54,000 nt of DNA from Perkinsela sp. CCAP 1560/9 (Eukaryota > Protista > Euglenozoa: Kinetoplastea). The stretch spans positions 1 through 54,000 of the forward strand of contig CBFFSA010000053.1 of assembly GCA_965644495.1 (NCBI GenBank), in the 5' to 3' direction. Below are positions 2,068 through 50,373 of the stretch, piece after piece. Each line of letters begins with the position of its first letter. Position 1 is the first letter of the stretch. The notes beneath the pieces were generated by a model. It saw nothing but the letters and a program-made list of their open reading frames with translations. It was not told the origin of the DNA and did no database searches. The position numbers were made by a program, and so were the translations under genes.

Positions 2068-2300
2068 CCATTCGCGCGTTCCGGACCGGGTCTTTCGACC
2101 TCTCCACGGCCTGACTTGTGAACCCTTCCCTTGTTATATGGGAGGGCGCAGGCGCGGGCCTGTGTCGACAGCGACACGGTCACGAAACAGGATGCTGGCC
2201 GACGGGGAGGAGATTCACTGCCCGTGTACTACCTCACTTGGGGTACCTAGCCCTCGCGGGCTAGGCGTGAGTATAGACTCTGTCGACCCGACCAGCATCC
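2068..2300 (-). ncRNA. Conserved structured 3'-UTR RNA element (copy in A)
   Basis: Near-identical ~233-nt block shared with B, C and E; several hairpins with GNRA loops. Confidence 0.7.
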
Positions 2301-4426: not shown

Positions 4427-5500
4427 TTTTTTTTTTTTGATAACAATAATAATAAAAAAGGAAGCAATCCACGCCCAATCCATCCGCGCGTTCCAACGTT
4501 TTTAACAAAACGCCTTTTTTTTTTTTTTTTTTGAAACTATCCGTAGAAACCAATTTGAACTTTTTTTTTTTTTTTTTTTTTTTACTTTCTTACTTACTTT
4601 CCTACTTACTTTACTTCGCCCTTATCAACTTCGCCCGCTTCTCTCCCTTATCTCCACCCCCCCAAAGAAACCATCCGTGACTTCCCGACTTCACCCGCTT
4701 CTTTTCCTCACTTCCCCCCCCCGATCATCCATCCGCGCCTTCCAAACTTTGCCCTCCTCTTTCCCTCACTTCCCCCCAGAAATCAATCCGCGCGTGCTCC
4801 ACCCCTTCTTCCAGCAGTGCGCGCTTCGGATCGGGTCTCTCGACCTCTCCACGGCCTGGCTTGGGAACCCTTCCCTTGTTATGCGGGAGGGCTCAGGCGC
4901 GGGCATGTGCCGACAGCGGCACTTTTTTTTTTTTTTTTTGCAATTAATAAGGGGGGAGAAGTATGAATCGCGGCATTGCCTCTATATTTTGACCCAGTAG
5001 ACGAACCAAGTAGGTCCATTGGGGGGGGGTATACGAGTTGAAAACAAACAATCAAATTAGCAATTCTTTTTCTGTCCACAGATGTACCTTTTTTCTCAGC
5101 CCAAAACTAGCAATTTAGTCTCCCCTAAGTATATACTACAAACAAGAAAAACAGTAAAAATTAAAACAAGCAATCCATGCCCAATCCATTCGCGCGTTCC
5201 GGACCGGGTCTTTCGACCTCTCCACGGCCTGACTTGTGAACCCTTCCCTTGTTATATGGGAGGGCGCAGGCGCGGGCCTGTGTCGACAGCGACACGGTCA
5301 CGAAACAGGATGCTGGCCGACGGGTTTTTTTTTTTTTTTTTTTTTTTTTGCAGTTAATAAGGGGGGAGAAGTATGAATCGCGGCATTGCCTCTATATTTT
5401 GACCCAGTAGACGAACCAAGTAGGTCCATTGGGGGGGGGGGTATACGAGTTGAAAACAAGCAATCAAATTAGCAATTCTTTTTGTTTCCACAGATGTACC
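4427..5500 (-). mobile_element. Chain of five short polyadenylated fragments, mostly retrotransposon 3'-UTR pieces
   Basis: T-runs at 4427-4438, 4515-4532, 4561-4583, 4923-4939 and 5325-5349. Intervening pieces match the shared 3' UTR (one diverged, 4584-4922) or are unassigned (4533-4560). Confidence 0.85.
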
Positions 5501-5965
5501 TTTTTTTTTTTTTGTTTTTATGCAAATAAAGAAAATTTTTCTCTCTCTTTCTCCTCTTTCTCACCTCTTGACATACTTTTCCCACCTTTCTCCCTACTTT
5601 CCTGCTTTCCCCTACCCAACTTTTCAACTTTTCAGGGGGGGTAAGGTCTCCCTCAGCTTCGCCTCACCCGGCCTGCAGGCGGCTCCTCAACCATTCGCGC
5701 GTTCCGGACCGGGTCTTTCGACCTCTCCACGGCCTGACTTGTGGACCTTTCCCTTGTTATACGGGAGGGCGCAGGCGCGGGCCTGTGTCGACAGCGACAC
5801 GGTCGCGAAACAGGATGCTGGCCGACGGGGAGGAGATTCACTACCCGTGTACTACCTCACTTGGGGTACCTAGCCCTGACGGACTAGGCGTGAGTATAGA
5901 CTCTGTCGACGAGACCAGCACCCTCAGCCTTCGAACATGCCGGGATCCGCGAGCCTTGGTTTAGG

Positions 5966-8900: not shown

Positions 8901-9907
8901 TTATTCGCGGGATTGGCTACAGAGTCAGTCGAGGTTCCTTTGCAAGCGTTGTCGTGTGTTGCTCGTTTGCCTTCTTCGTAATGTCGCCCGCATTTCTGGC
9001 AGAGAAAGCGCCCTTCGTTCGTCCACCAGGATTCGGGCACTTCATTCGCGTGTCTTGTAGCTACGTGGTTGTAGTAAGCTTGCCACCTGCCGCCATGAGC
9101 GAGTGTTTTCCACACGCACCCTTTAACTGGGCAAGTTTTCAAAGAGTCCTGAGGCGTGCTGCGGAATGCGGCTAAAGACGGAGGAAGTTTGGATTTGCCG
9201 CTTGGTGTTTTGTCTGTCCGGTGACCTGTCGTAGGAAAATAATTCGAGAAGCTTTTCGCTATGTCTCGGCGGCGCTTTTGTTTACCGTTTTGAGTGGGCT
9301 CAGGTGTCACGCTGTCTTCGTGCTCGTCACCCTCGGGGCTTGAAGAGTTGGTACCGTCAGTACACGTCGTTGCCGTTCGTTTTATTCGTTTCTTCTTTCT
9401 CCTACCTTTGCGTTTTGTTGTGATTGTGAAGTCAAGTTCAGTAGGCGTGAGGTCTGGAAACATCATCGCGTTCTCTGTGTCAACGGCACCTTCCATTCTC
9501 CTTGTTCGACGCAGGCATCTCTCCTTCACAGCCCTGTTTGAAGTTTGTAATTGGCTGGGTGAATTTGAGTGCGTTCCCTCGAAATGGAAAGGGGAAGGTT
9601 CATCGTCCCGACGCACACTGCAGTGTATCTCTTCCTCGGTTCTTTCACTTGATAGTTCATTCGCATGCCCCAAATCTGGCGTTGAGTCCTGCGTTGCCGT
9701 CTTCATACTTCGAAGGATTTCGTCCGTTCTCTTTTCCCAGTCCTGAGGAATATCATTAGGGAGGGCTGTGGTGTAGATTAGCTCATCGTACGTGCTAGGT
9801 CCCTTCGCTAAAGATTTGTTTGCCGCAAATTGATCCCAGGACCCAAGTGTGTGAGACGACGCCTCCTCCTCGAAGGTCGGATTTTGCTCTTCAACGGATG
9901 TGGGCAT
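5966..9907 (-). CDS. LsmAD-like + 2 Zn fingers + reverse transcriptase + CCHC/REL endonuclease polyprotein (1313 aa)
   Basis: GSWDQFAAN..STYDELIYTT..TEEEIHCSVRR; CPVKGC..YNHVATRH; CQKC..H...C; RPIAAGE, DLANAFN, QGDPLGP, YLDD; CPINTC..HAVSC, RHN, RPGD, LDFAVTH. Confidence 0.93.
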   Translation of the reverse strand: MPTSVEEQNPTFEEEASSHTLGSWDQFAANKSLAKGPSTYDELIYTTALPNDIPQDWEKRTDEILRSMKTATQDSTPDLGHANELSSERTEEEIHCSVRRDDEPSPFHFEGTHSNSPSQLQTSNRAVKERCLRRTRRMEGAVDTENAMMFPDLTPTELDFTITTKRKGRRKKKRIKRTATTCTDGTNSSSPEGDEHEDSVTPEPTQNGKQKRRRDIAKSFSNYFPTTGHRTDKTPSGKSKLPPSLAAFRSTPQDSLKTCPVKGCVWKTLAHGGRWQAYYNHVATRHANEVPESWWTNEGRFLCQKCGRHYEEGKRATHDNACKGTSTDSVANPANNLTQSSLDHGSRSTDVSQSVQPLPLPSLSDICMTPINTSRDVPFRCRYQWAKTLTDVLSSVASENSVAAWTRLGMLPKCVLPAPNRGGRKGRLSYASHVTKSLERWGKVEFTALWIEATKNNTKSSHPSTKDQDQDQELAQEVRRAKERCEKLVRQGEVSRGMSALTAAPFAPDNDETYCKLMAKHPTRAQDCMLQDLPYPNAPPLKVNEEEVKHALGSFRKGSSGGTMSLRAEHLQIALRAHVDEKVHPLTALTDVVNVLLSGKAPFEIQERFAGARLCALQKGECDVRPIAAGETIRRLVGKVACLTAKKKASRLFKGIQYGVATPAGSERVIHLCRQTMSRHADDTNFVLCKVDLANAFNRVSRSAFIALLRKHFPELSAWVEWTYSTDSLLTYGSRTLPSSEGVQQGDPLGPLLFSLVMLEAAKMIKEALPGSLQLHLWYLDDGVIAGKAEDVSFALETLSRVGPKWGLHINTSKCEIITNPASAHQTALFSDIPEPKINREGNFDILGSPIGSAQHCIDFLTTHAVEPAEETLEAIEMLEDPQIALSLIRQCAGFCQMVHSLRTTPPHELSALCQRLDEAVLHAYEWNICPLSSSARSQVQRPKRYGGFGLRSASAHRSAAYVSSVAFAAETDRWLPSDAEGFSSAVLDINRRSGGPVVDPDTGRALEEISSPFPTGSSQSTETDNSCTPRQRALSDAISAHEFSCAYAAADSSTRARYTSQTGDGASSWAFCIPSTELGHAYTPTEFRALSRWWLGAKVYNELSTCPINTCQQPLDLEGNHAVSCKSGNGLISRHNALITQFTDTCSKANLSPSREVSLGNLGPGGCPTRPGDVFIPGYEKAQGLVLDFAVTHVQQPKYTDLVRNANGVAAGSFAEHYAASHKVKEREEAEQAKHVFVAMVVESYGAWSASALSILRWVGKHRASCSQGTLSQEAATRQLLQELNLTLMRSQSRMLVSRMPAEDPQPALILQ

Positions 9908-10019: not shown

Positions 10020-10811
10020 TTTTTTTTTTTTTTTTTTTTTTGTTTTTATGCAAATAAAGAAAATTTTTCTCTCTCTTTCTCCTCTTTCTCACCTCTTGAC
10101 ATACTTTTCCCACCTTTCTCCCTACTTTCCTTCTTTCCCCTACCCAACTTTTCAACTTTTCAGGGGGGGTAAGGTCTCCCTCAGCTTCGCCTCACCCGGC
10201 CTGCAGGCGGCTCCTCAACCATTCGCGCGTTCCGGACCGGGTCTTTCGACCTCTCCACGGCCTGACTTGTGGACCTTTCCCTTGTTATACGGGAGGGCGC
10301 AGGCGCGGGCCTGTGTCGACAGCGACACGGTCGCGAAACAGGATGCTGGCCGACGGGGAGGAGATTCACTACCCGTGTACTACCTCACTTGGGGTACCTA
10401 GCCCTGACGGACTAGGCGTGAGTATAGACTCTGTCGACGAGACCAGCACCCTCAGCCTTCGAACATGCCGGGATCCGCGAGCCTTGGTTTAGGCTACTGC
10501 AAAATAAGTGCCGGTTGTGGATCTTCAGCCGGCATGCGTGAGACAAGCATTCTCGATTGAGAACGCATCAGGGTGAGGTTAAGCTCTTGAAGCAGCTGAC
10601 GGGTAGCTGCTTCTTGAGATAGAGTCCCCTGGGAACATGAGGCGCGATGCTTCCCAACCCATCTAAGGATTGATAGGGCACTTGCACTCCAAGCACCATA
10701 TGATTCTACCACCATGGCAACAAACACATGTTTTGCTTGTTCCGCCTCCTCTCTCTCTTTCACCTTGTGAGAAGCGACGTAGTGCTCCGCAAATGATCCT
10801 GCCGCCACCCC
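10020..10811 (-). mobile_element. 5'-truncated lineage B copy
   Basis: Nearly identical to the 3' end of B (C-terminal ~104 aa plus UTR); poly(A) as T-run 10020-10041. Confidence 0.92.
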
Positions 10812-10821
10812 GATCCTGCCG

Positions 10822-11269
10822 CCAATCCATTCGCGCGTTCCGGACCGGGTCTTTCGACCTCTCCACGGCCTGACTTGTGAACCCTTCCCTTGTTATATGG
10901 GAGGGCGCAGGCGCGGGCCTGTGTCGACAGCGACACGGTCACGAAACAGGATGCTGGCCGACGGGTTTCTTTTTTTTTTTTTTTTTTTTGCAGTTAATAA
11001 GGGGGGAGAAGTATGAATCGCGGCATTGCCTCTATATTTTGACCCAGTAGACGAACCAAGTAGGTCCATTGGGGGGGGGTATACGAGTTGAAAACAAGCA
11101 ATCAAATTAGCAATTCTTTTTGTTTCTACAGATGTACCTTTTGTTTTTTCTCAGCCCAAAACTAGCAATTTAATCTCCCCTAAGTATATACTACAAACAA
11201 GAAACAGTAAAAACTAAAACAAGCAATACAGACCCAATCCATTCGCGCGTTCCGGACCGGGTCTTTCGA
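10822..11269 (-). mobile_element. Two 3'-UTR-only fragments
   Basis: 10822-10965 is part of the conserved RNA. 10970-11269 is the end of the conserved RNA plus distal UTR and poly(A). Confidence 0.85.
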
Positions 11270-11897: not shown

Positions 11898-12027
11898 CAA
11901 CTCGTATACCCCCCCCCCCCGAATGGACCTACTTGGTTCGTCTACTGGGTCAAAATATAGAGGCAATGCCGCGATTCATACTTCTCCCCCCTTATTAACT
12001 GCAAAAAAAAAAAAAAAAAAAAAAAAA
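11898..12027 (+). mobile_element. Distal 3'-UTR fragment with poly(A)
   Basis: caactcgtatacccc..ttattaactgc(A)25, the same sequence as the minus-strand pieces near 5350-5460 and 10990-11090. Confidence 0.85.
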
Positions 12028-15000
12028 CTTTAACGATACAACCATAACTTTACTCTTTAACGATAAAGATACAGTTTCTGTACCTTGTTGAATTATTTTC
12101 TTTTTTCCTTTCCCCTTTTTGGTTCAACTAGTATGTCCTGCCGCGAACGTCCATGTACACACTCCTCAGAAAATGAAGCGTTCTTAGCAAGAATGGTGAA
12201 CACAGACGACGTTACATTGAACGAGGCGGAGAAATCACACCTTCTTGGTAGTTGGAATCAATTTGAGGGCAACAGACATCTCATCTCAGCTCCCAGTACC
12301 TATGACGAAAGTCTGTACACAACGGAAATCCCGAGGAATATCCCTGCAGAATGGCTACGCCTCGCTGAAAAAAAATCAGACGACCGCGAAACACCGGACA
12401 CGGGACACCACCTAGCCGAGAATGAGGAAATACAACACTGCGCAGTACAACGAAAGGGTACGACAGCCAACCTTGCAGCTAGTATTTCTACTCTGAAATC
12501 AGGGCCAGCAATCAACGCTGCACTGAAGGATGCAATATCACGTCAACAGCGCAATGCGGATGGGATCAAAGGAGTTTCAAAGACGGATAACCGATCACCT
12601 AGGCGACCCTTGGAAACACGAAGGCAACACCAACAGACTATTAAGGACAGCACCCTCGGCGAACAAACGCCGACACGCTCTCAGCCAGCCCACCAGATCC
12701 AATCACCTCCAAAGCATTCCTCCGGCACAAAACCCATGACTAGCGAAACTGGTTGTTCCGAAGCACAATCGGACGGTAGGCGCGAAGACTTTGGCAACAG
12801 ATATGCCCCACGAAACGGAAGCGACAAGCCCCCGCCACTTCCGCAGAGCGCTCCCAAACACCGCATCTGTCCTGCTGAAGGATGCGCCTGGCGCACGATT
12901 GCACATGGAGGGTCTTGGCAAGCATATTATAACCACGTAGCGTACCACCACAGTACCGGCGTCCCGGCTGCATGGTGGGCAGCGGAAGGCAAGTTCCTTT
13001 GTGAAACGTGCGGCAAACACTACACGCTCAACCGTAAAACTACGCACCCGAAGACCTGCATCGGTCAATCAAGTCAAGCAGCACAAATGTCAGTAGATAT
13101 TTTTTCGCAGCACTCCATCGTAACAGAAACCGCCGAATTACCTACTTTGGCAAGTGTCTGCACACTCGCGAAGAGCACATGTAAAGACGTGCCCCACCGA
13201 TGCCGTCAGCTGTGGGCGGAGATCTTAACTAGCGCTTTGAAGGCAGCAGTACAAGAAAACTCAGTAGCGACATGGACACTCCTTGCCATGCTCCCAAAGT
13301 GTGTGTTACCGGCCCCTCGACGCGGAGGGCGTAAAGGCTACATGGCGTACTCATCCCACGTTCGAAAGTGCATGGAGCGATGGATGGCAAAGGAATACAC
13401 TCAGTTGTGGAAAGAGGCAGCCGCTAATAGACGACAACGAAACCCTGACCCCATTTCGGAACAACATGAGGCCCAGAAAGCCGTCATCCGCGCAGAACTT
13501 CTAGTCAGACAAGGTGAATTCTCTAGAGGTATGGCTGCCTTAACCGCAGCGCCAATGGCAGATGAAAACGAAGAAACATATGCAAAGCTGTTGGAGAAGC
13601 ATCCGGCACGTCAAACTACTACGGAAGCCCTCGCCGACCCTCCACCACATGTCAAACATTTGAACCTCGAAGAATCCGATATTAAAGTAGCCATAAACAG
13701 TTTTCGTCGAGGATCTTCAGCAGGTACGATGGGTCTCCGCCCGGAACACTTACAATCCGCGCTTCTTTCCTACGAAGACAAGAATGTTCACCCGCTTCAG
13801 GAACTCACAAACCTAGCTAATCATCTTCTTTCTGGCAAAGCACCCATCGAAGTACAAGCATATTTCGCAGGTGCGCGACTATGTGCGCTCAAGAAGGGGG
13901 AAAACGACGTTCGCCCTATCGCAGCGGGGGAGACTATTCGTCGGTTAGTGAGCAAGGCCGCATGCAGTAGTGTCCGAATGAAAGCGGGGAAATACTTTGA
14001 AGCACAACAATATGGAGTGGCCACCCGAGCAGGGGCAGAACGTATCATTCACCTTTGTAGGCTTGCAATGGACACTGACACAACAAATTCCGATATAGTT
14101 TTATGCAAAGTTGATTTGTCCAACGCATTTAACAACGTTAGCCGTGACGCATTCATCAGTCTCACCAGAGAGCACTTCCCGGAATTGTCCAGATGGGTAG
14201 AATGGTGCTACGTCGAAACCAGTAGCTTAACTTACGGGCACCGTTTCGTACCGTCCGCGGAAGGGGTACAACAGGGCGATCCCCTCGGTCCTCTTCTCTT
14301 TTCCTTAGTCATGTTGGAGGTTACCAAACAAATTCAGTCGTACACGGAACTTCTTCTAAACCTGTGGTACTTAGACGATGGAGTTTTTATAGGGAAAGCG
14401 GAAGAAGTAAGAAAAGCCCTCGACATACTTGATCACCTCGGACCAGGTCAGGGACTACACCTCAATAGCAAGAAATGCGAGATCATCACACTACCCTCAT
14501 CTGCACACCAAACATCTCTTTTCCCAGATATACCAAAAGACAAGCAAAACACAGAAGGAAATTTCGACATCCTAGGAAGCCCTATCGGATCCCACAAACA
14601 CTGCGCCGAATACCTCATGACCAATGCGATCGAACCAGCAGAAGAAACTTTAGTTGCTTCCAGTTTAATTGAGGACCCGCAGGTCGCCATGGCACTGATA
14701 CGACAATGTGCTGGCTTTTGTCAACTGGTCTACGCCCTACGTACAACACCCCCACAATGCATACAACGCGTTTGCGAACATCTAGACAATTCACTGTTGA
14801 GCACAGCAGAGGAAATACTTTGCCCACTGAACGCCCCTGCCCGCGCTCAGATCCAACGCCTGAAGAGACACGGAGGTTTCGGTCTGCGTTCATCGGAAAT
14901 GTACTCGTCTTCAGCTTACATAGCATCTGTGGTGTTCGCAGCAAGCAAGGACGGATGGAATCCACTGGACGCGGAAGGTTTTTCACCTGCCGTCAACGAC

Positions 15001-16551
15001 GTGAACGCAAAAGCCGGAGGCACTCTCGTAGATCCCGAAACGGGTCGTTTCCTTTGCCCCACCACCCAACAGCGCGACCGATCACATCCCTCTTTTCCAC
15101 CAAAGCCACCCATTCACTCTTCCACACAGGTCGATACAGCCCGCGAGCCATCAGACACCGGACCTTTTTTAGATGCTGACCCGCCGTTGGGCGCTGACCT
15201 TGACATAGATATTGACCCGCCAGAATGGGACGAAAGTATCATCCCACGTCATAAAGATATCATCCGCGCTATAGGGGAAAGGGAGTTTAATATAGCATAC
15301 TGTTCCGCTGATACACGAACGCGAACCAGATGGGTATCACAATCAGGGAAAGGGGCTAGCAGCTGGGCATTCGTCACCCCATCGAAGGACCTGGGCTATG
15401 CATTCAAACCCGCGGAGTTTCGAACCTTGTGTCGATGGTGGTTGGGGGTGGATGTATACGGAGAAACTCGTCCATGTCCCTCGGATGAATGCAAACTCCC
15501 TCTGGGTCCTGAAGGGGATCACGCACTCGTGTGCAAACATGGACAAGGTATAATAAACCGGCACAATTCCCTGGTTGAACATTTTTCCTCCTTCTGCGGG
15601 CATGCCTCTTTGGCACCCCAACGAGAGCACAGTCTTGGCAATCGAGGTCCCGGAGGGGGGCTCACCAGACCAGGCGATGTGTTTCTCCCCACGTATTCCA
15701 AGGCTAAAGGCATGGTCCTTGATTTTGCAGTTACCCACGCTCAGCAAACTAAATACACGGACAAAGTTCGTAACGCTAGCTGGGTAGCTGCAGGATCATT
15801 CGCCGAGCACTACGCCGCGGAAAAAAAGGTGCACCAACGGTTGGAGGCTGAGGAAGCAGGCCATGAATTCACAGCCATGGTGGTAGAGAGCTATGGCTCC
15901 TGGAGCGTGAGCGCAACGTCCGTTCTAAAGGGAGTCGGAAAGAGGCGGGCACAGGCCTCAAATGGGACCCTTAAGGAAGAGCAGGCTACAAATAAATTGT
16001 ATGCCGAATTGAATGTGACCCTCATGCGAGCACAAGCTCGTATGATGGTTACACGCATGGCTGTGCCCGACCCGAACGAGCCCATCACGGAAGGATAGTG
16101 TCGGACCCAACGGATCCTATGGTGGTGACATAGGCCACGGGTGCTGGTCGGGTCGACAGAGTCTATGCTCACGCCTAGCCCGCGAGGGCTAGGTACCCCA
16201 AGTGAGGTAGTACACGGGTAGTGAATCTCCTCCCCGTCGGCCAGCATCCTGTTTCGCGACCGTGTCGCTGTCGACACAGGCCCGCGCCTGCGCCCTCCCA
16301 TATAGCAAGGGAAGGGTTCACAAGTCAGGCCGTGGAGTGGTCGAAAGACCCGGTCCGGAACGCGCGAATGGATTGGGTCTGTATTGCTTGTTTTAGTTTT
16401 TACTGTTTCTTGTTTGTAGTATATACTTAGGGGAGATTAAATTGCCAGTTTTGGGCTGAGAAAAAACAAAAGGTACATCTGTGGAAACAAAAAGATTTGC
16501 TAATTTGATTGCTTGTTTTCAACTCGTAAAAAAAAAAAAAAAAAAAAAAAA
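12026..16551 (+). mobile_element. Full-length CRE/SLACS-type retrotransposon, lineage C
   Basis: SL-like head 12026-12090, intact ORF, shared 3' RNA 16139-16371, poly(A) 16528-16551. Confidence 0.93.
12133..16098 (+). CDS. LsmAD-like + Zn fingers + RT + REL polyprotein (lineage C)
   Basis: First ATG at 12133 (the track's TTG start lies inside the SL). GSWNQFEGN..STYDESLYTT..EEIQHCAVQR; CPAEGC..H..H; YLDD; RHN, RPGD, LDFAVTH. Confidence 0.93.
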   Translation: MSCRERPCTHSSENEAFLARMVNTDDVTLNEAEKSHLLGSWNQFEGNRHLISAPSTYDESLYTTEIPRNIPAEWLRLAEKKSDDRETPDTGHHLAENEEIQHCAVQRKGTTANLAASISTLKSGPAINAALKDAISRQQRNADGIKGVSKTDNRSPRRPLETRRQHQQTIKDSTLGEQTPTRSQPAHQIQSPPKHSSGTKPMTSETGCSEAQSDGRREDFGNRYAPRNGSDKPPPLPQSAPKHRICPAEGCAWRTIAHGGSWQAYYNHVAYHHSTGVPAAWWAAEGKFLCETCGKHYTLNRKTTHPKTCIGQSSQAAQMSVDIFSQHSIVTETAELPTLASVCTLAKSTCKDVPHRCRQLWAEILTSALKAAVQENSVATWTLLAMLPKCVLPAPRRGGRKGYMAYSSHVRKCMERWMAKEYTQLWKEAAANRRQRNPDPISEQHEAQKAVIRAELLVRQGEFSRGMAALTAAPMADENEETYAKLLEKHPARQTTTEALADPPPHVKHLNLEESDIKVAINSFRRGSSAGTMGLRPEHLQSALLSYEDKNVHPLQELTNLANHLLSGKAPIEVQAYFAGARLCALKKGENDVRPIAAGETIRRLVSKAACSSVRMKAGKYFEAQQYGVATRAGAERIIHLCRLAMDTDTTNSDIVLCKVDLSNAFNNVSRDAFISLTREHFPELSRWVEWCYVETSSLTYGHRFVPSAEGVQQGDPLGPLLFSLVMLEVTKQIQSYTELLLNLWYLDDGVFIGKAEEVRKALDILDHLGPGQGLHLNSKKCEIITLPSSAHQTSLFPDIPKDKQNTEGNFDILGSPIGSHKHCAEYLMTNAIEPAEETLVASSLIEDPQVAMALIRQCAGFCQLVYALRTTPPQCIQRVCEHLDNSLLSTAEEILCPLNAPARAQIQRLKRHGGFGLRSSEMYSSSAYIASVVFAASKDGWNPLDAEGFSPAVNDVNAKAGGTLVDPETGRFLCPTTQQRDRSHPSFPPKPPIHSSTQVDTAREPSDTGPFLDADPPLGADLDIDIDPPEWDESIIPRHKDIIRAIGEREFNIAYCSADTRTRTRWVSQSGKGASSWAFVTPSKDLGYAFKPAEFRTLCRWWLGVDVYGETRPCPSDECKLPLGPEGDHALVCKHGQGIINRHNSLVEHFSSFCGHASLAPQREHSLGNRGPGGGLTRPGDVFLPTYSKAKGMVLDFAVTHAQQTKYTDKVRNASWVAAGSFAEHYAAEKKVHQRLEAEEAGHEFTAMVVESYGSWSVSATSVLKGVGKRRAQASNGTLKEEQATNKLYAELNVTLMRAQARMMVTRMAVPDPNEPITEG

Positions 16552-17223
16552 TGACACTCCGTTTTATGACGTTATGATGTGGAACAAGGACCCCAATTCA
16601 CGCGTAAAATCACTATCTGAAGCGTGCGCGGAGGACCTGGGCATTGAAATCGAACACTTATGGGAACAGGCACAAGATCGTACAGCATGGCGTATGCTGG
16701 TTGAAGGCTTGAGGGAGAACCTTGAACCTACCGCACGTTACGTACCTGTGTCAATAAAAAAGCGAGAAATAGAACAAATCTTACTCTCAAACGCGAGCCC
16801 GATGGAAAAGTGGGAATCTTTGCAGTTTTTCGAAGAGGGATCGACGTTGTGGCCCGATTATGGACTCTTGCACATGTATTGTGATGGGTCATCACAACGT
16901 AAATTCAACCAAATAGTCGCGGGAGCTGCGGTAGCTGTGGCACAGAACGGGTATGTTGCCTTTTCGAAGAAACAATCATTGCAAAAGGCGGACGCTACAT
17001 CCATCAGATCAGAGCTTCACGCATTTTTTCTTGCACTGCAAATCGGGGAGGGTAAGCAAGAATCCTTCGTTGTGCATGTCGATTCGGAGTACGTCTGGAA
17101 CTTTTGGCACAAAATACGTGTACCGTATCAGTTGGGTAAATACGCAGACTGGGAAAATGCAGATTTGCTTGAACGTATTTCCAGCTTGGCCGAACGTATT
17201 TCCAGCTTGAACGTATTTCCAGC
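16552..17223 (+). pseudogene. LINE fragment: post-RT AxDRxxWR motif followed by RNase H N-terminal half
   Basis: AQDRTAWR (RTE-like), LHMYCDGS, SIRSELHAF, VHVDSEY; ends in a triple junction repeat. Confidence 0.72.
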
Positions 17224-20200
17224 TTTCTGTACCTTGTTGATTTAATTTTCTATTTTTCTACGCTTATGACACGCCTTTCTCGTACGTCTCGTTTAGATTC
17301 CGAAAACACGCGGAAAAAGGGCAGCAGAACAACAGTGAACAACGGGAAGTCTCACGGGAGAGTTGAAAAACAACGTACTCAACGAGATCAAAGCAAGACG
17401 AACGGAATAAAGGTAGCAGAAGAATCAGGATCGCACACGGAGACACCAGTGAAGGTGAAGAAGACTCCAAAGATCAAGATAATAGGTTCCAAAACACTAG
17501 CCCCGAATTGGGCGGACCATGAGCCTCCGTGTGAAATCACATCGCGGAATCTAATCAAAATCAAAGCCAAGAACTTCCGCATCGGATCTACGAGTCAATC
17601 ACACGAGAACATAGCCCATGACGAAAACCATATCCAAGAGGACCCAGCCAAAGAAATGTCCGAAACAGAAAGCGAGACCAGTGATACAATGTGTCTGGAC
17701 GACGATGGATCGACGCAAGATCGAGTACAGGAGCTAATGACACAGGCCGGCAACAAATCGCCCGACCAAGTGTACAACATCGTTTCCAAGTGGGGCAAGG
17801 GTACAGAATGTGTGATCGAATGGGGCTTCCGACAGAACACTACAAACTACAAGTCAAACGGCATCGTTGTAGGCAGGACCGTGCGAAAATCAACCGTGAA
17901 AGTCAAGATTTCATACGAGCCGGCTCTAGGTCACGATGGTCCATGCGGTTTTCTTTATCTTCCACCGTCCAATAAAATCAGAATCTGTAACCTCCAAGCC
18001 ACTAAGTTATTCAAAATCGAGATGCCGACACAAAATTTGGAGGAACAAGCGGAGCACATCTCATGCGAAGACGGTCAGAGTGACCTTGATCCGCTCCCGC
18101 CTATGGCTCAAATAGACCCATCTTTCGCGGTTCATGTTGTGGCGATTTTCCGTGCGATAATTCGGGGATATGCAGCGGCGGAGCTTGACTCAGAAAAAGA
18201 GGCGATATGGCACAAATTTTTGAATGCGCCTCGCGATTCACTTGCGACAGTACGTCAAGCAATTCGACGAAACCAAAAAGTAGCTCATGTTCGCAACGAC
18301 CGAGAAAACTTGGAAGCTAGCAACTTGAGTGCGGAACAACGGGCGGAGTTAGAAATTGACAGGCGTTCGATCAGGCACGCCCTACAGACGGCGCGGGCAG
18401 GAAACCTTGGCAAAGCAACTCGGATCCTGGACAATGTCTACAAGGAATCAGCTCTCACTCCTGAAGAAAAAGTGCGAAAGCTTCAACAACTTCATCCTGA
18501 AGGCGACGCCATACGAATCTTTGGAGTGTGTTGTGTTTTTTCACTTCAAAAGAAGTGTTTTTTCATAAAGAATATTTTCTTGTAGTATATACAAGGGGTT
18601 AAAAAAGATAAGCTGGCTGCTCGCGCTCGATCTGGTCAAATCTTCGGATTTGACTTGCGTGCTGCGTGGCACAGCTCCTAGCAAGCGATAAGGGGGGGCT
18701 TGTCCTAGGGAGGTAACATCTCCTCGGAGATATTTTGCCTAAAAATCAATCAATCAATCAATACGAATCCCGGAAGCAGACTTCCCACGGACTGGCGTTG
18801 TTGAGAAATCAGAGGTTCGCCTAGCGACCGAAAAATTATCCAGAGGCGCTTCACCAGGACCAACCGGCCTGAGTGAAAGCATGATGCGACTGCTCGTAGA
18901 CGACGAAGAGTCATGTCTTTCACTTTGCCACATGCTTCGGGATGTCATCAACGGCGAAGTTCCTCTGAATGTGCGAAAACGTCTAACCCGATGCAGAATC
19001 ATCGCGCTAGCGAAACCTCAAAATGGAATTCGACCTATTGCGATGGGGGATACCATTCTGAAGATTTGCGGTTCCATCCTTCTACAACGACATGAAAACG
19101 CTCTGCAAAATTTTTTCTCCCCAATTCAACGAGGCATTTTGCAAAAAAACGCATGTGAGTCCATCGTTCACGAACTTTTAAATGAATACGAAGAAGGACA
19201 TGCTATCCTCACCGTCGATTTTAGCAACGCGTATAATACACCACAACGCAACGCCATTGCTGAGGCACTCCTTGGTAATCCCATTTTCAAGCCTTTCATG
19301 CGCCTATTCTACCTAGAATATGGGATTCCCTCTGAGCTGCTATTTTTTGCGCACAATGCTCTGTTTGCTACCATCGAAAGCTCTTCAGGAATTCGCCAAG
19401 GATCGGCACTTTCATCAATGTACTTCTGCGCACTTTTGCAAGGCCCGCTACGAGAACTCATGCACCTCTATCCTGACGTGAAGATCCGAGCATACCAAGA
19501 CGATGTGACTTTGAGCTCCAAAAACGTGCAAGCATTGGAGGCAGCTTTCTTTTACCTGCGTGAGATCGCCGCAGAGATGAACCTCCGAATTAATTTCCAG
19601 AAATGCGATTGGTTTCAGAAGAACATTCCCAACATAGCTCAGCCTCCTCCGTTGGAAAAACTTGGAGTAAACTTTTGCAGTGATGCGATAAAAGTCTTAG
19701 GCGCATACGTAGGTACAGACCAAGTCGTGGAAAATCTGCTGATCAAGAAAATGGAGAAACACAAGTGCCTATTCCGCAGGTTGTTGCTTATGGGTCCCAG
19801 TAATTTGTCTCTTGCCATTCTCCGCCGTTGTACGATTCCACGGCACGATTACCATCTACGAGTACATCGGCCAGGCGCTACTTTCCAACTAGCACAATCC
19901 TTCGAGAACCAAGTAAACAAAGTTCTAGAAAAGTGGAGTGGAGCAGACGCAAACGCCCTGAAACTCGCCGCTCTACCACAGAAACTCGGTGGCCTAGGCT
20001 TAATTTCCTCGACTCTGAAGCAAAAACATTTCTTCGAAACTGCCAGCAAATCTATTGATGAGCACCTTAAACCCAATAACGCTCCGGTAGATCAGAAAGG
20101 CAGCGAAAAAGCTATGAAACAACCGCAAAGTCGAGGAGAGGCAGCGCGCAAGCTATTGAAAAAGAAGCTAAGTGCAGAACACGATAAACAGATAACTGAG

Positions 20201-45600: not shown

Positions 45601-47497
45601 GTTGGATGACCCTCAAGTGGCCCTATCGCTCATTCGTCATTGCACAGGATTTTGCAAAATGGTGTATGCTCTACGCACGACACCTACCGCGGAGCTACAA
45701 GACCTTTGCGAACGCCTGGACCGAGCAGTCCAAAACACGACGGAGCGCTTTATCGGTCCTTTGGGTGAATCGGCTCGACGACAGGCCCAACGAGACAAAC
45801 GACACGGAGGATTAGGGTTGAGGTCCGCTGCAACACACGCCACATCAGCATACGTATCTTCTGTGGCCTTTGCGTCTGCAAATGACCGTTGGGACCCCAC
45901 GCAAGCTGAGAGTTTTGAATTCGCAGTACGGGACGTCAATAGGCGCGCGGGCTATAACTTCGTTTCAAATACAGGGAGAATTCCAAAACCTTCGTCTTCC
46001 CCACCTGAACAGTTGAACCCAGAAACAGCAAACTCCGACGATATCATCCCGGACGAAAGAATCCTAGAAGTTTTGCACCCCGACGACGCAGACCCTGAAG
46101 CCTCTCGCCCCGTACTAGTAATCCCGCGACAACGAGAATTAAGCCAGGTGATTTCAGCATCCCAATACTTGGCAGACTATAAAAACGCAGATGACAAAAC
46201 CAGAGCCCGATGGGTATCCCAAACGGGAGAAGGGGCATCGGAGTGGGCCTTTGTGATTCCATCGAAGACCAGTGGTTTCGCTTTCACTTCCGCCGAGTTT
46301 CGCACTCTGACGCGATGGTGGCTAGGGGAAAAAATTTACCCCAAGGCAAGACCCTGCCCTATGGACAAATGTGGGCTCCCGCTAGGCCCTGAGGGGGACC
46401 ATGCACTTTCCTGCAAGAGTGGGCATGGTATCATCGCTCGCCACAACGCTCTTGCCAGACAGTTTGCCCGAGACTGCACAAATGCCGGGCTTACAACGAA
46501 GCGGGAAGTAAGCCTGCATAACACGGGCCCTGGCGGCGGTCTGACGCGACCGGCGGACGTATTTATCTCAAGTTTTCGAGCGGGTCAGGGCCTTGTAATG
46601 GATTTCGCTGTCACACACGTCCAGCAAACAAAATATACGGATCTAGTCCGTGATGCTAGCGTGGTTTCAGCTGGATCCTTTGCGGAAAGATACGCAACGG
46701 AACACAAGCAGAAACAACGGGAAGAAGCCGCCGCAGCCAAACTCCGATTTGCGGCCATGGCCGTAGAATCATACGGCTCATGGTGCCCCAGCGCTATGGC
46801 TGTGATCCGTGACGTGGCAATTGAGCACTCAATGCACTCCGGTAAACTATCCAAAAAAGAAGCCTTACATCGACTTCTTGCTGGCTTGAACGTCACTTTA
46901 ATGCGGTCGCAGGCACGTATGATGGTGCTACGATCCTCACCGACACCTGACCCAGCCCTGATAGGCTATGGCGATATGGAAGTGGTGTAGTTCCATCCTC
47001 TTTTGCATCCTCTGGTCCGGATGTTGGTCGTGTCGACAGAGTCTATACTCACGCCTAGCCCGCGAGGGCTAGGTACCCCAAGTGAGGTAGTACACGGGTA
47101 GTGAATCTCCTCCCCGTCGGCCAGCATCCTGTTTCGTGACCGTGTCGCTGTCGACACAGGCCCGCGCCTGCGCCCTCCCGTATAGCAAGGGAAGGGTTCA
47201 CAAGTCAGGCCGTGGAGAGGTCGAAAGACCCGGTCCGGAACGCGCGAATGGATTGGGCATGGATTGCTTGTTTTAATTTTTACTGTTTTTCTTGTTTGTA
47301 GTATATACTTAGGGGAGACTAAATTGCTAGTTTTGGGCTGAGAAAAAAGGTACATCTGTGGACAGAAAAAGAATTGCTAATTTGATTGTTTGTTAAAAAA
47401 AAAAGAAAATACTTCTGTGGAAATAAAAGGAATTGCTAATTTGATTGCTTGTTTTAAATTCATATACCACCAAAAAAAAAAAAAAAAAAAAAAAAAA
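42636..47497 (+). mobile_element. Full-length CRE/SLACS-type retrotransposon, lineage E
   Basis: Triple SL-like head 42636-42710, intact ORF, shared 3' RNA 47019-47251, poly(A) 47472-47497. Confidence 0.93.
42746..46990 (+). CDS. LsmAD-like + ~29-aa repeats + Zn fingers + RT + REL polyprotein (lineage E)
   Basis: First ATG at 42746; GSWDQFKGN..STYDESLYTT..TEEEIHCSVQR; CPVESC..H..H; FLDD; RHN, RPAD, MDFAVTH. Confidence 0.93.
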   Translation: MVMNETHPDNHPEDTPFDPGIMDSNQNSVHEEKSHELGSWDQFKGNEHLIRSASTYDESLYTTAIPQNIPHDWMRRAHALEKDIETPDMGHVHDRTEEEIHCSVQRDIDKSNNADFEGADSIPHSQLSTFSKAAKMTDECSNVNPDGTDSTSLSQLSTSSKAVKTTDEGPNVNFEGTDATSPSQLRKSNKAVKARFLRHLRNSEHSKNCYESESSTATFPDLTPTDLVSHFSVSSSLKRRKNKKCSKRNITSQTSLNQSGSESTVATESGSDGVSVEPVSSQDSCVTSEVKLKRNRATFKSEPVKSPNLTRKTKTSYNARKCPVESCLWQTGPHGNQWQAYYNHVSNRHGAEVTDTWWAEEGRFRCAYCKKHYHLGKKESHTRHCKFRTHSSDNPQDPSREVNDSPNPTTNAAVMPERPPGTNPNDQPDQMEDVDNLLPTLSSVCTLPVITSKDIPYCCRAEWARVLTSCLMAATLDNTLEAWTLLAMLPKCVLPAPRRGGSKNKTSYASYVRKCLSRWNQKEYIPLWSEAIASLQRKRKSPAQATSVEENDDKAALRAARLARDGELSRAMTAMTSEPLAPHDDATYNKLINKHPPRLSGEDPGEQLPSSSVTPLKITQENVTEALSSFHRGSSGGAFGLRPEHVQIAMAYHNDERIDPLGTLTKFVNHLLSGGAMDEVQPHFAGGRLCALHKGAHDVRPIAAGETLRRLASKVACFSVKPKACRLFRGHQYGVAIPAGAERVIHLCRLTMAEHVDDEDFVLCKVDLRNAFNHVSRNSFISLTRQYFPELSPYVEWCYSSDSRLTFGDRTITSSEGVQQGDPLGPLLFSLVAKELFTEIKKAAPRLDLNMWFLDDGVLSGKSSDVRHALDVIAVEGPKWGLHLNVAKCELITNPAASDRFALFPDIPGLNKNTDGNLDILGSPIGSTSFCHRYLLENPISLAEDSLTAIQKLDDPQVALSLIRHCTGFCKMVYALRTTPTAELQDLCERLDRAVQNTTERFIGPLGESARRQAQRDKRHGGLGLRSAATHATSAYVSSVAFASANDRWDPTQAESFEFAVRDVNRRAGYNFVSNTGRIPKPSSSPPEQLNPETANSDDIIPDERILEVLHPDDADPEASRPVLVIPRQRELSQVISASQYLADYKNADDKTRARWVSQTGEGASEWAFVIPSKTSGFAFTSAEFRTLTRWWLGEKIYPKARPCPMDKCGLPLGPEGDHALSCKSGHGIIARHNALARQFARDCTNAGLTTKREVSLHNTGPGGGLTRPADVFISSFRAGQGLVMDFAVTHVQQTKYTDLVRDASVVSAGSFAERYATEHKQKQREEAAAAKLRFAAMAVESYGSWCPSAMAVIRDVAIEHSMHSGKLSKKEALHRLLAGLNVTLMRSQARMMVLRSSPTPDPALIGYGDMEVV

Positions 47498-47921
47498 GGC
47501 GTGAGTCTATACTCACGCCTAGCCCGCGAGGGCTAGGTACCCCAAGTGAGGTAGTACACGGGTAGTGAATCTCCTCCCCGTCGGCCAGCATCCTGTTTCG
47601 TGACCGTGTCGCTGTCGACACAGGCCCGCGCCTGCGCCCTCCTGTATAACAAGGGAAGGGTTCACAAGTCAGGCCGTGGAGAGGTCGAAAGACCCGGTCC
47701 GGAACGCGCGAATGGATTGGGCATAGATTGCTAGTTTTTATTGTTATTGTTTTTATTGTTCTTATACTTACGGGAGATCGAATTGCTAGTTTTGGGCTCC
47801 AAAATATGAAATTGCTAATTTGATTGCTTGTTTTAAAATCATATACCCCCCCAATGGACCTACTTGGTTCGTCTAATGGGTCAAAATATAGAGGCAATGC
47901 CAAAAAAAAAAAAAAAAAAAA
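47498..47921 (+). mobile_element. 3'-UTR-only fragment (variant distal UTR) with poly(A)
   Basis: Conserved RNA plus distal UTR; A-run 47902-47921; 5' fold-back GGCGTGAGT-CTAT-ACTCACGCC. Confidence 0.85.
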
Positions 47922-49500
47922 TATGGAGGTTTTGGTCTCCGATCTGCATCTGCGCACCGCTCAGCGGCGTACGTGTCTTCAGTTGCTTTTGCTGCAGAGA
48001 CGGATCGTTGGCTACCGTCAGATGCAGAAGGATTCTCTTCCGCAGTCCTGGACATCAATCGCCGGAGCGGAGGCCCCGTAGTTGATCCGGACACGGGAAG
48101 AGCATTAGAGGAGATCAGCTCCCCTTTTCCGACAGGATCTAGTCAAAGTACAGAAACGGACAATTCTTGCACCCCCCGTCAACGTGCCTTGAGCGACGCA
48201 ATCTCGGCGCACGAATTTTCATATGCGTACGCAGCGGCGGACAGTAGCACTCGCGCGAGGTACACCTCTCAGACTGGAGATGGGGCCAGCAGCTGGGCAT
48301 TTTGCATCCCATCAACAGAGCTTGGCCACGCTTACACACCCACAGAATTCCGCGCCCTCTCCAGGTGGTGGTTAGGTGCCAAGGTCTACAACGAGTTGAG
48401 CACGTGCCCAATTAACACATGCCAACAACCTCTCGACCTCGAAGGAAACCATGCAGTGTCTTGCAAAAGTGGGAATGGACTGATCTCCCGCCACAATGCG
48501 CTCATTACACAATTCACCGACACGTGCTCCAAGGCGAATTTATCACCTTCACGTGAGGTAAGCCTGGGGAACCTAGGGCCTGGCGGCTGTCCCACGAGGC
48601 CGGGCGATGTCTTTATTCCGGGCTATGAGAAAGCTCAAGGTCTGGTGCTTGATTTTGCTGTCACCCACGTTCAGCAACCTAAATACACGGACTTAGTCCG
48701 CAACGCTAACGGGGTGGCGGCAGGATCATTTGCGGAGCACTACGCCGCTTCTCACAAGGTGAAAGAGAGAGAGGAGGCGGAACAAGCAAAACATGTGTTT
48801 GTTGCCATGGTGGTAGAATCATATGGTGCTTGGAGTGCAAGTGCCCTATCAATCCTTAGATGGGTTGGGAAGCATCGCGCCTCATGTTCCCAGGGGACTC
48901 TATCTCAAGAAGCAGCTACCCGTCAGCTGCTTCAAGAGCTTAACCTCACCCTGATGCGTTCTCAATCGAGAATGCTTGTCTCACGCATGCCGGCTGAAGA
49001 TCCACAACCGGCACTTATTTTGCAGTAGCCTAAACCAAGGCTCGCGGATCCCGGCATGTTCGAAGGCTGAGGGTGCTGGTCTCGTCGACAGAGTCTATAC
49101 TCACGCCTAGTCCGTCAGGGCTAGGTACCCCAAGTGAGGTAGTACACGGGTAGTGAATCTCCTCCCCGTCGGCCAGCATCCTGTTTCGCGACCGTGTCGC
49201 TGTCGACACAGGCCCGCGCCTGCGCCCTCCCGTATAACAAGGGAAAGGTCCACAAGTCAGGCCGTGGAGAGGTCGAAAGACCCGGTCCGGAACGCGCGAA
49301 TGGTTGAGGAGCCGCCTGCAGGCCGGGTGAGGCGAAGCTGAGGGAGACCTTACCCCCCCTGAAAAGTTGAAAAGTTGGGTAGGGGAAAGCAGGAAAGTAG
49401 GGAGAAAGGTGGGAAAAGTATGTCAAGAGGTGAGAAAGAGGAGAAAGAGAGAGAAAAATTTTCTTTATTTGCATAAAAAAAAAAAAAAAAAAAAAAAAAA
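47922..49500 (+). mobile_element. 5'-truncated lineage B copy
   Basis: Nearly identical to the B C-terminus (ORF remnant to 49028) and UTR; A-run 49475-49500. Confidence 0.92.
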
Positions 49501-50115
49501 CGACTTCTTGCTGGCTTGAACGTCACTTTAATGCGGTCGCAGGCACGTATGATGGTGCTACGATCCTCACCGACACCTGACCCAGCCCTGATAGGCTATG
49601 GCGATATGGAAGTGGTGTAGTTCCATCCTCTTTTGCATCCTCTGGTCCGGATGTTGGTCGTGTCGACAGAGTCTATACTCACGCCTAGCCCGCGAGGGCT
49701 AGGTACCCCAAGTGAGGTAGTACACGGGTAGTGAATCTCCTCCCCGTCGGCCAGCATCCTGTTTCGTGACCGTGTCGCTGTCGACACAGGCCCGCGCCTG
49801 CGCCCTCCCGTATAGCAAGGGAAGGGTTCACAAGTCAGGCCGTGGAGAGGTCGAAAGACCCGGTCCGGAACGCGCGAATGGATTGGGCATGGATTGCTTG
49901 TTTTAATTTTTACTGTTTTTCTTGTTTGTAGTATATACTTAGGGGAGACTAAATTGCTAGTTTTGGGCTGAGAAAAAAGGTACATCTGTGGACAGAAAAA
50001 GAATTGCTAATTTGATTGTTTGTTAAAAAAAAAAGAAAATACTTCTGTGGAAATAAAAGGAATTGCTAATTTGATTGCTTGTTTTAAATTCAAAAAAAAA
50101 AAAAAAAAAAAAAAA
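49501..50115 (+). mobile_element. 5'-truncated lineage E copy
   Basis: Matches E 46871-47461; A-run 50092-50115. Confidence 0.92.
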
Positions 50116-50332
50116 GGGACGGGGTCCTGGGGTTTGGTGGTTGTCCCTATAATTTTGGAAGGTTATAGATGTTAATCGGTTGACAAACTTTATCCTCACG
50201 CCTTGGTTTTCGAAAAAACAAGGTTCCCCAATGTGAGATAAAGGTGAGTAAAGTTTTCTTTACTCTGCGATTAGCGCCTTAATGTTTTTAACCGCGTCAT
50301 TGTTGACACGGCCAAAAAAAAAAAAAAAAAAA
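50116..50332 (+). ncRNA. Diverged homolog of the conserved 3'-UTR RNA, polyadenylated fragment
   Basis: Same stem order with compensatory changes (see findings); A-run 50314-50332. Confidence 0.65.
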
Positions 50333-50335
50333 TAG

Positions 50336-50373
50336 AACTTTAACGATAAAGATACAGTTTCTGTACCTTGTTG
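50336..50373 (+). other. Spliced-leader-like exon (38 nt)
   Basis: AACTTTAACGATAAAGATACAGTTTCTGTACCTTGTTG, followed by the element UTR rather than a GT-initiated SL intron. Confidence 0.82.

Follow-up and report, generated by a model that had tools for sequence, protein, structure and literature searches.

A swapped, covarying two-domain RNA in the 3′ regions of diverged R2-like retrotransposons of Perkinsela

A 54,000-nucleotide stretch of the Perkinsela sp. CCAP 1560/9 genome (assembly GCA_965644495.1, contig CBFFSA010000053.1, positions 1 to 54,000 of the forward strand; hereafter the window) contains retrotransposons that carry the same 233-nt block a short distance past open reading frames (ORFs) of diverged sequence. 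Our analysis shows that this block, whose reference copy belongs to a retrotransposon that we call element A, is a real structured RNA with no counterpart in Rfam and that its fold is under selection on transmitted copies. Comparison of copies indicates that the block is swapped among lineages of its carriers by template switching or recombination. The carriers themselves are classed, from the sequence of their reverse transcriptase (RT) and a predicted fold of their C-terminus, as R2-like retrotransposons without long terminal repeats (non-LTR), of the restriction-like endonuclease (RLE) type. The function that we favour, with some confidence and well short of certainty, is that of an RT-recognition scaffold by which the element protein would pick its template and start target-primed reverse transcription. 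A preliminary description of the same DNA had singled out the block as a novel cis-acting structured RNA, and this judgement is borne out by strong covariation and by the lack of any Rfam match at the gathering score or at E < 0.01.

Element A has an ORF of 1337 amino acids (12085-16098), a block that begins 40 nt past the stop codon, and a tail of about 155 nt that ends in poly(A) at 16528-16552. Eight full or near-full copies of the block, the reference included, occur in the window at 95-97% identity by BLAST (Table 1), whereas the carrier ORFs align with each other in the window self-comparison at 65-74% over parts, or not at all, and the carrier proteins are 54-68% identical across their C-terminal 300 residues. 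At the DNA level, identity among the carrier ORFs amounts to only 61-69%. A near-identical 3′ block behind diverged ORFs, as first described, is therefore what the window contains. Copies in the genome as a whole number about 280-330. Across the 21-Mb assembly, a 22-nt motif from Domain I has 277 exact matches and a 23-nt motif from Domain II has 327, against 0 for each reversed control, and all of the 150 full-length copies scored with the covariance model built here exceed 277 bits, a lower bound on their number. The copies are spread over many contigs, megabase-sized ones included. Flanking context was taken from a sample of 72 distinct copies out of the approximately 300 in the genome. In this sample the block always lies on the sense strand of an RT ORF, 26-77 nt past the stop codon, and at least 10 ORF lineages, distinguished by their C-terminal peptides, end at that distance upstream. 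All of the copies that were inspected lie within retroelements. The block has a sharp 5′ edge, with the preceding five bases varying by lineage, and no other 3′ sequence is present in every carrier; two unrelated types of tail come after it. The earlier phrase "almost unchanged" does not fit everywhere: at least three main block types stand 6-16% apart (the second is 84-88% identical to the first), mosaics exist, and diverged variants at 84-94% identity are joined by remote AT-rich variants at much lower identity.

The block folds as two domains. Domain I is closed by P1, a 12-bp stem (16139-16150 with 16238-16249), and holds P2 (16161-16172 with 16202-16213), the P3 hairpin (16173-16181 with 16186-16194), and the P4 hairpin of variable sequence (16216-16221 with 16230-16235); five, four, three, and three pairs of these helices, respectively, are changed on both sides among the variants. 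An invariant bulge of seven bases, ACCCCAA, sits on the 3′ side of Domain I at 16195-16201. The closing stem of Domain II, P5, pairs 16252-16262 with 16351-16360 around P6 (16262-16267 with 16272-16277, loop CTGT), the long P7/P8 hairpin (16286-16299 with 16309-16330), and P9 (16339-16350) with its GAAA loop. The P7/P8 bulge, TCACAAGT, contains CAAG and is similar to the bulge of Domain I, and four Domain II pairs (146/155, 165/214, 170/211, and 180/193 of alignment A3) are changed on both sides in 19-21 sequences. Each domain contains one instance (16168-16206 and 16286-16330) of a sub-motif made up of a stem of 5 bp, a hairpin of 9 bp with a G-U closing pair, and a 3′ bulge of 7-8 nt that includes C(A/C)CAA. 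The sub-motif is also present in the remote variant, and its recurrence may stem from an internal duplication or provide a twofold platform for protein binding.

All but one of the helices put forward in the preliminary description recur in this fold. The 75-pair consensus has 98.6% of its cells paired across 61 distinct variants, against 31-44% in controls with the 3′ partners shifted one to three columns. The helix that did not survive is TTCG[CT]G/CGCGAA, proposed for the 3′ extension, which the preliminary description included in the block: it has no covariation, two of its pairs are broken in 13 and 5 sequences, and it is impossible in one lineage with intact ORF ends, whose sequence departs from the others immediately beyond ...CGGAAC. 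The variation agrees better with a pairing between UUCG and CGGA. Since the proposed helix is unsupported, the functional 3′ edge is placed near 16360.

Thermodynamic folding favors the sense strand, which reaches -110.8 kcal/mol (z = -4.46) with 0 of 200 shuffles folding as well, while the antisense strand has z = -2.58. Of the 31 substitutions that separate the two main block types, the 150 paired columns hold 13 and the 90 unpaired columns hold 18, so that paired columns change 2.3 times less often. Twelve of the 13 paired-column substitutions keep the pair (eight as four double compensations and four through G-U), and the remaining one breaks a terminal pair. When the 31 substitutions are placed at random, at least four pairs are substituted on both sides with p = 0.04, and these four compensations, taken alone, are suggestive but not decisive. 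The remote variants, on which the case for structure rests, are decisive. A remote AT-rich form at 50162-50336 of the window was found by the covariance model (48 bits, E 5e-13) and has relatives at five other loci; two further remote forms were found in the same way. When 13 variants were aligned with MAFFT, without structural information, over Domain I and the first hairpin of Domain II (mean column identity 71%), 94% of cells were paired and 17 of 44 pairs were changed on both sides, compared with 4-6 in slid controls and with a count that 0 of 500 shuffles reached. A model-fitted alignment, which leans to the model, has 37 of 77 pairs changed on both sides. The remote form alone also folds into the plan of Domain I, with a closing stem, a hairpin within that stem, a 3′ bulge, and a second hairpin. 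Selection on the fold is visible in how the variants are distributed. Those present in at least two distinct sequences fall in 26 paired and 34 unpaired columns, with pairing retained at 18 of the 26; singletons fall in 24 paired and 7 unpaired columns, with pairing lost at 13 of the 24 (Fisher p = 0.002 for shared versus singleton variants over paired and unpaired columns). The singletons are probably decay after insertion.

Table 1. Copies and parts of the 3′ block in the window (positions in the 54,000-nt stretch)
Feature	Position	Strand	Remarks
Block, element A (reference)	16139..16371	+	233 nt; window BLAST; 288 bits with covariance model R1
Domain I	16139..16249	+	P1-P4; MAFFT alignment of 13 variants
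Long-range helix, 5′ strand GTCGACAG	16152..16159	+	pairs with 16268-16275 CTGTCGAC
Domain II	16252..16360	+	P5 closing three hairpins, P6, P7/P8, and P9
3′ extension CGCGCGAATGG	16361..16371	+	conserved, but replaced in one lineage; proposed helix unsupported
Block, element C	2068..2300	-	ORF 2375-4483, - strand; BLAST; 285 bits
Block, element B	5691..5923	-	ORF 5966-9907, - strand; BLAST; 276 bits
Block on B-type element truncated at 5′ side	10219..10451	-	BLAST, covariance model
Block, element E	47019..47251	+	ORF 42728-46990, + strand; BLAST; 289 bits
5′-truncated block copy, starting within Domain I	47503..47715	+	immediately 3′ of poly(A); BLAST, covariance model
B-type block on truncated element	49071..49303	+	BLAST, covariance model
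E-type block	49649..49881	+	element truncated inside ORF end; BLAST, covariance model
Domain II-only copy	5186..5324	-	truncated at P1 3′ strand; BLAST, covariance model
Domain II-only copy	10827..10965	-	truncated at P1 3′ strand; BLAST, covariance model
Domain II fragment, diverged	4819..4922	-	86.5% identity; BLAST, covariance model
Short non-coding poly(A)-ended element	50116..50333	+	remote AT-rich homologue of Domain I and P6 (50167-50311); 48 bits, E 5e-13

The preliminary description had suggested a comparison with Rfam, and no family matches. At the gathering score the window gave no hit, and a permissive search of 16050-16560 and four other loci found nothing below E 0.01; its best matches at E 0.05-0.13, one a hairpin of 20 nt and the other a GAAA hairpin of 16 nt, are not credible. 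ARAGORN found nothing, and a BLAST search of a phage collection gave no match, as expected. These searches bear on two ideas also raised at the outset, namely that the element has a ribozyme here, which would be self-cleaving, or that a host non-coding RNA was captured, for example a derivative of a transfer RNA (tRNA), 7SL, or a small nuclear RNA. The fold is indeed compact with a pseudoknot, and retroelements elsewhere carry ribozymes and RNA-derived heads. Even so, we consider both ideas highly improbable, as no Rfam model, ribozymes included, reaches E 0.01 at the five loci searched and ARAGORN reports no tRNA. The truncated copies have no fixed start of the kind a cleavage point would leave, DNA copies cross both block edges with no processed ends evident, and no stand-alone copy was seen among the inspected copies, all of them within retroelements, in a search that was not exhaustive.

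The pseudoknot proposed between ACAG and the CTGT loop is supported by covariation and is longer than first drawn. Its 3′ strand is made of the P6 loop and the 3′ strand of P6, and its 8 bp are 100% paired in 11 variants with three compensatory pairs, one of which turns G-C into A-U in the remote form at a loop base outside the P6 stem. The computed energy of the long-range duplex is -11.7 kcal/mol versus -6.2 kcal/mol for the P6 hairpin, and because four bases of the P6 3′ strand also belong to the helix, the hairpin cannot coexist with the complete helix. Lineage H, in which the ORF end is open in most of the sampled copies, has a C-A mismatch in the helix, which suggests that a helix of seven pairs is tolerated. 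Covariation is blind to whether the two strands belong to one RNA or to two, and 16152-16159 and 16268-16275 could instead form a dimer-linkage site that joins two templates and promotes template switching and hence mosaics. Each segment can pair with the other in every variant, two variants have palindromic segments, and recombination breakpoints fall inside the block and at both of its edges. We regard this intermolecular pairing as improbable, given the mismatch of lineage H, and we know of no description of non-LTR element RNAs dimerizing through such a site.

Regardless of how the helix forms, the histories of the block and of its carriers do not agree. Lineages A and F have blocks that are 100% identical behind C-terminal proteins that are 64% identical. 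The proteins of C, F, and K are 79-83% identical, and yet K has the second block type, at 85% to the others, while the blocks of I, J, and K are 96-97% identical with proteins at 61-70%. B and B2 have ORFs that are 98% identical and blocks that differ because the block of B2 is a mosaic of two types. Tail types also combine variously with blocks, even inside one ORF lineage (C versus C2). The block, ORF, and tail phylogenies thus conflict, and near-identity of the block is therefore attributed to repeated module exchange rather than slow evolution. One further observation concerns lineage H (L030 reverse strand 545-598; L072, L059), in which a degenerate Domain II-like stretch (…GCACAGACCCACGTTTGCGCCCTC…) lies between the stop codon and the block; it could be what is left of an earlier 3′ module ahead of the current one. 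Exchange that is real, as the block-ORF mismatches of A/F, K, and B/B2 demonstrate, invites the reading that the block is functionless, recently spread by recombination or template switching, with its structure a by-product of G+C-rich sequence. The preliminary description had likewise allowed that gene conversion without covariation might explain the identity; exchange between lineages does explain it, yet covariation is present. Exchange cannot yield the compensatory double changes in 17 of 44 pairs, cannot keep a common architecture in remote variants of low identity, and leaves unexplained why shared variants avoid stems and singletons do not. Disfavored by this covariation, a functionless block strikes us as very improbable.

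The assignment of the carriers to the R2-like elements draws on the RT and on the C-terminal part of the protein. Pfam recognizes only an RT domain and an LsmAD-like N-terminal match in the carrier ORFs. Among sequences in the PDB, the RT is closest to R2 proteins (8gh6 at E 1.7e-7, and also 9nl2 and 8ibw, with E values ranging to 1e-3), and R2Bm is among the R2 chains matched. In the C-terminal 257 residues, a CCHC-type motif occurs together with acidic and lysine residues suggestive of a restriction-like endonuclease. A sequence search of the PDB with this region found no match. It was therefore compared as a model built from an alignment of 20 relatives (predicted local distance difference test 84.6, predicted template modeling score 0.84), for which Foldseek returned the C-terminal part of seven R2 chains at E 3.6e-6 to 4.6e-4 and probability 1.00, followed by PD-(D/E)XK nucleases. 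Taken together, the RT sequence and the predicted zinc-knuckle and endonuclease fold point to R2-like retrotransposons of the RLE type. The N-terminus of element E (42728-46987, residues 60-114) matches the LsmAD domain of ataxin-2/Pbp1 above the cut-off (E 4.8e-6), and element A (12085-16095) has a weak match at the same end. Distant RT relatives from metagenomes (P0019, P0021, and P0037; 38-42% identity) have other host-like domains, either the MLLE/PABP C-terminal domain or ubiquitin, which suggests that RNA-metabolism modules have been captured recurrently in the clade of these RTs. Full-length elements begin directly after the preceding poly(A) (window 12026-12090 and 50336-50372) with a spliced-leader-like sequence ending in ...CAGTTTCTGTACCTTG, which we take to resemble the spliced leaders of euglenozoan protists; at 12026 the first 14 bases of this head are partially repeated just ahead of it. 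The ENA assembly ERZ24900291 also contains the organism. Another RT lineage in the window, with a 1179-residue ORF, forms a 5.37-kb tandem array at 21499-42483 whose units are 99.9% identical and carry no copy of the block.

The copies that lack an ORF give a view of how the block travels. The "UTR-only pieces" of the preliminary description, named for the untranslated region (UTR), do exist, but they are ordinary 5′-truncated copies, each joined at its head to the poly(A) of the preceding copy and in some cases tandemly amplified. Their starting points vary, lying either within the block or 18-52 nt upstream of it, and DNA copies continue through both block edges. Of approximately 12 copies truncated in or near the block, four start within the 3′ strand of P1 (46-row alignment A4; 10965-10975, 5324-5398, L056:2276, and L046:1964), as if reverse transcription often halts on meeting the stable Domain I. 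The 2.28-kb tandem arrays elsewhere in the genome are an amplified chain of such fragments. Such arrays lie on contigs C30 and C62 (locus L030, G000:C30:8220-11452, read on the reverse strand), and their unit is composed of several 5′-truncated retro-copies ending in poly(A), with two different block types and a spliced-leader-headed ORF start among them. Additionally, a non-coding element with a fixed 5′ start right after poly(A) carries a remote homologue of the block with the Domain I architecture and a related tail, and behaves like a short interspersed element (SINE) partner. Its copy in the window, at 50116-50333, is shortened, with polyadenylation directly after P6. A different SINE-like element at 18511-18769, with a second copy 95% identical on another contig (L035:523-749), is unrelated to the block.

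How the block acts can be approached through what all of these elements share. It is the only sequence common to the 3′ ends of all carriers and non-coding partners, its fold is selected, and it lies on the sense strand, all of which argue for RT recognition. In the mechanism that we propose, the element-encoded protein would bind the block RNA, and this binding would determine the choice of template and the start of target-primed reverse transcription, as for the 3′ UTR element of R2; we infer both the binding and the role in priming by this analogy. If all lineages use the same handle, the block could be swapped among them, and short non-coding partners carrying a version of it could be copied in trans. 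Several observations weigh against this proposal. The block lies 140-190 nt upstream of the poly(A), unlike the R2 and UnaL2 elements, which are at or next to the 3′ end. With carrier proteins that diverge to the extent described above, common recognition is an assumption. In the element at 50116-50333, Domain I and P6 are all of the block that was retroposed, and the greater part of Domain II is therefore perhaps dispensable. All of the covariation comes from paralogous copies in one genome because no homologue was found outside it: two exact-motif scans of Joint Genome Institute (JGI) metagenome contigs gave no matches, which proves little as only exact matches would count, and model R1 found only noise when run on the contigs that hold three distant RT relatives (38-40% identity), two of these contigs ending within 61 nt of the ORF.

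The position of the block also suggests a role on the element mRNA, whether in stability (for example, as resistance to exonuclease), nuclear export, translation, or choice of polyadenylation site in a host whose transcripts undergo trans-splicing with coupled polyadenylation. The block is just past the stop codon and far upstream of the poly(A), and the spliced-leader-like heads of the elements imply that their RNAs are handled as mRNAs. A junction strand that pairs with a downstream hairpin loop recalls exonuclease-resistant RNAs. We judge such a role unlikely, though worth keeping in mind, since no exonuclease-resistant Rfam family matches, the starts of truncated copies do not pile up at the 5′ edge of the block, and the presence of the block on non-coding partners fits mobilization better than translation control. 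A doubtful and more elaborate extension of the RT-recognition proposal is that the block may be a common "passport" RNA read by a guild of diverged R2-like RTs. The alternatives of P6 and the 8-bp helix, within one RNA or between two, would then be a switch that couples template choice to template switching, and the block would be both a recognition site and a recombination hot spot that homogenizes the 3′ ends of the guild.

Known retrotransposons offer close points of comparison. The pseudoknotted 3′ UTR RNA of R2 is bound by the element protein and is both necessary and sufficient for starting target-primed reverse transcription (PMC12222951). Like that RNA, the Perkinsela block is a multi-helix, pseudoknot-capable structure of about 230-250 nt, and the 3′ UTR that holds it is that of a non-LTR element of the RLE type with an R2-like RT and endonuclease. 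Unlike it, the block shows no covariance-model or sequence similarity to the Rfam family R2_retro_el, is followed by a tail of 140-190 nt and poly(A) where the R2 element abuts the target junction, is shared and exchanged among at least 10 lineages in one genome, and consists of two domains joined by a covarying long-range helix. In stringent long interspersed elements (LINEs), such as eel UnaL2 with UnaSINE1 and zebrafish L2, a 3′ RNA structure is recognized by the LINE protein and is common to partner SINEs (PMC1636434, PMC4176376), and the block resembles these tails in having a homologue on a short non-coding element. Theirs, however, is one stem-loop, a few dozen nucleotides long, placed at the 3′ terminus before short repeats, in elements of the apurinic/apyrimidinic endonuclease (APE) type, whereas the block is a 233-nt two-domain fold set back from the poly(A) in RLE-type elements. 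Arkhipova and Morrison reportedly described in 2001 two Giardia families that share a conserved 3′ UTR despite diverged ORFs, and we know of no structural model or covariation for that UTR. The Giardia elements GilM and GilT are telomeric RLE-type non-LTR elements of the CRE clade in head-to-tail arrays (PMC10088271), and the Perkinsela elements are likewise protist RLE-type elements with such arrays. Pr77 of the trypanosomatid ingi/L1Tc elements, a 77-nt 5′ module with promoter activity, is similar to the block as a short RNA or DNA module common to diverged autonomous and non-autonomous retroposons of protists that use spliced leaders (PMC1874656). The block differs from it as a 3′ module without a match to any ribozyme model, Pr77 being at the 5′ end of APE-type elements. 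Pr77 also has ribozyme activity. A LINE 3′ RNA that marks the template is thus of a known kind, and the fold of this one is absent from Rfam, with nothing similar found in the literature searched. Swapping among at least 10 lineages and a covarying helix between domains are unusual.

The block fold is a candidate for a new Rfam RNA family, and its setting gives it a wider use. Elements of the R2 type are being engineered for gene insertion, and it is their 3′ UTR RNA that makes a template acceptable to the protein. Perkinsela presents a natural experiment on this point, in which one fold has been kept by compensatory change and is apparently accepted by at least 10 proteins at 54-68% identity, as well as by non-coding partners. 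If the proposed binding is true, comparison of the proteins with their RNA variants would reveal the features and residues that set template specificity in RLE-type retrotransposons, and it would show how a shared recognition module drives recombination and competition among lineages that reside in the same genome.

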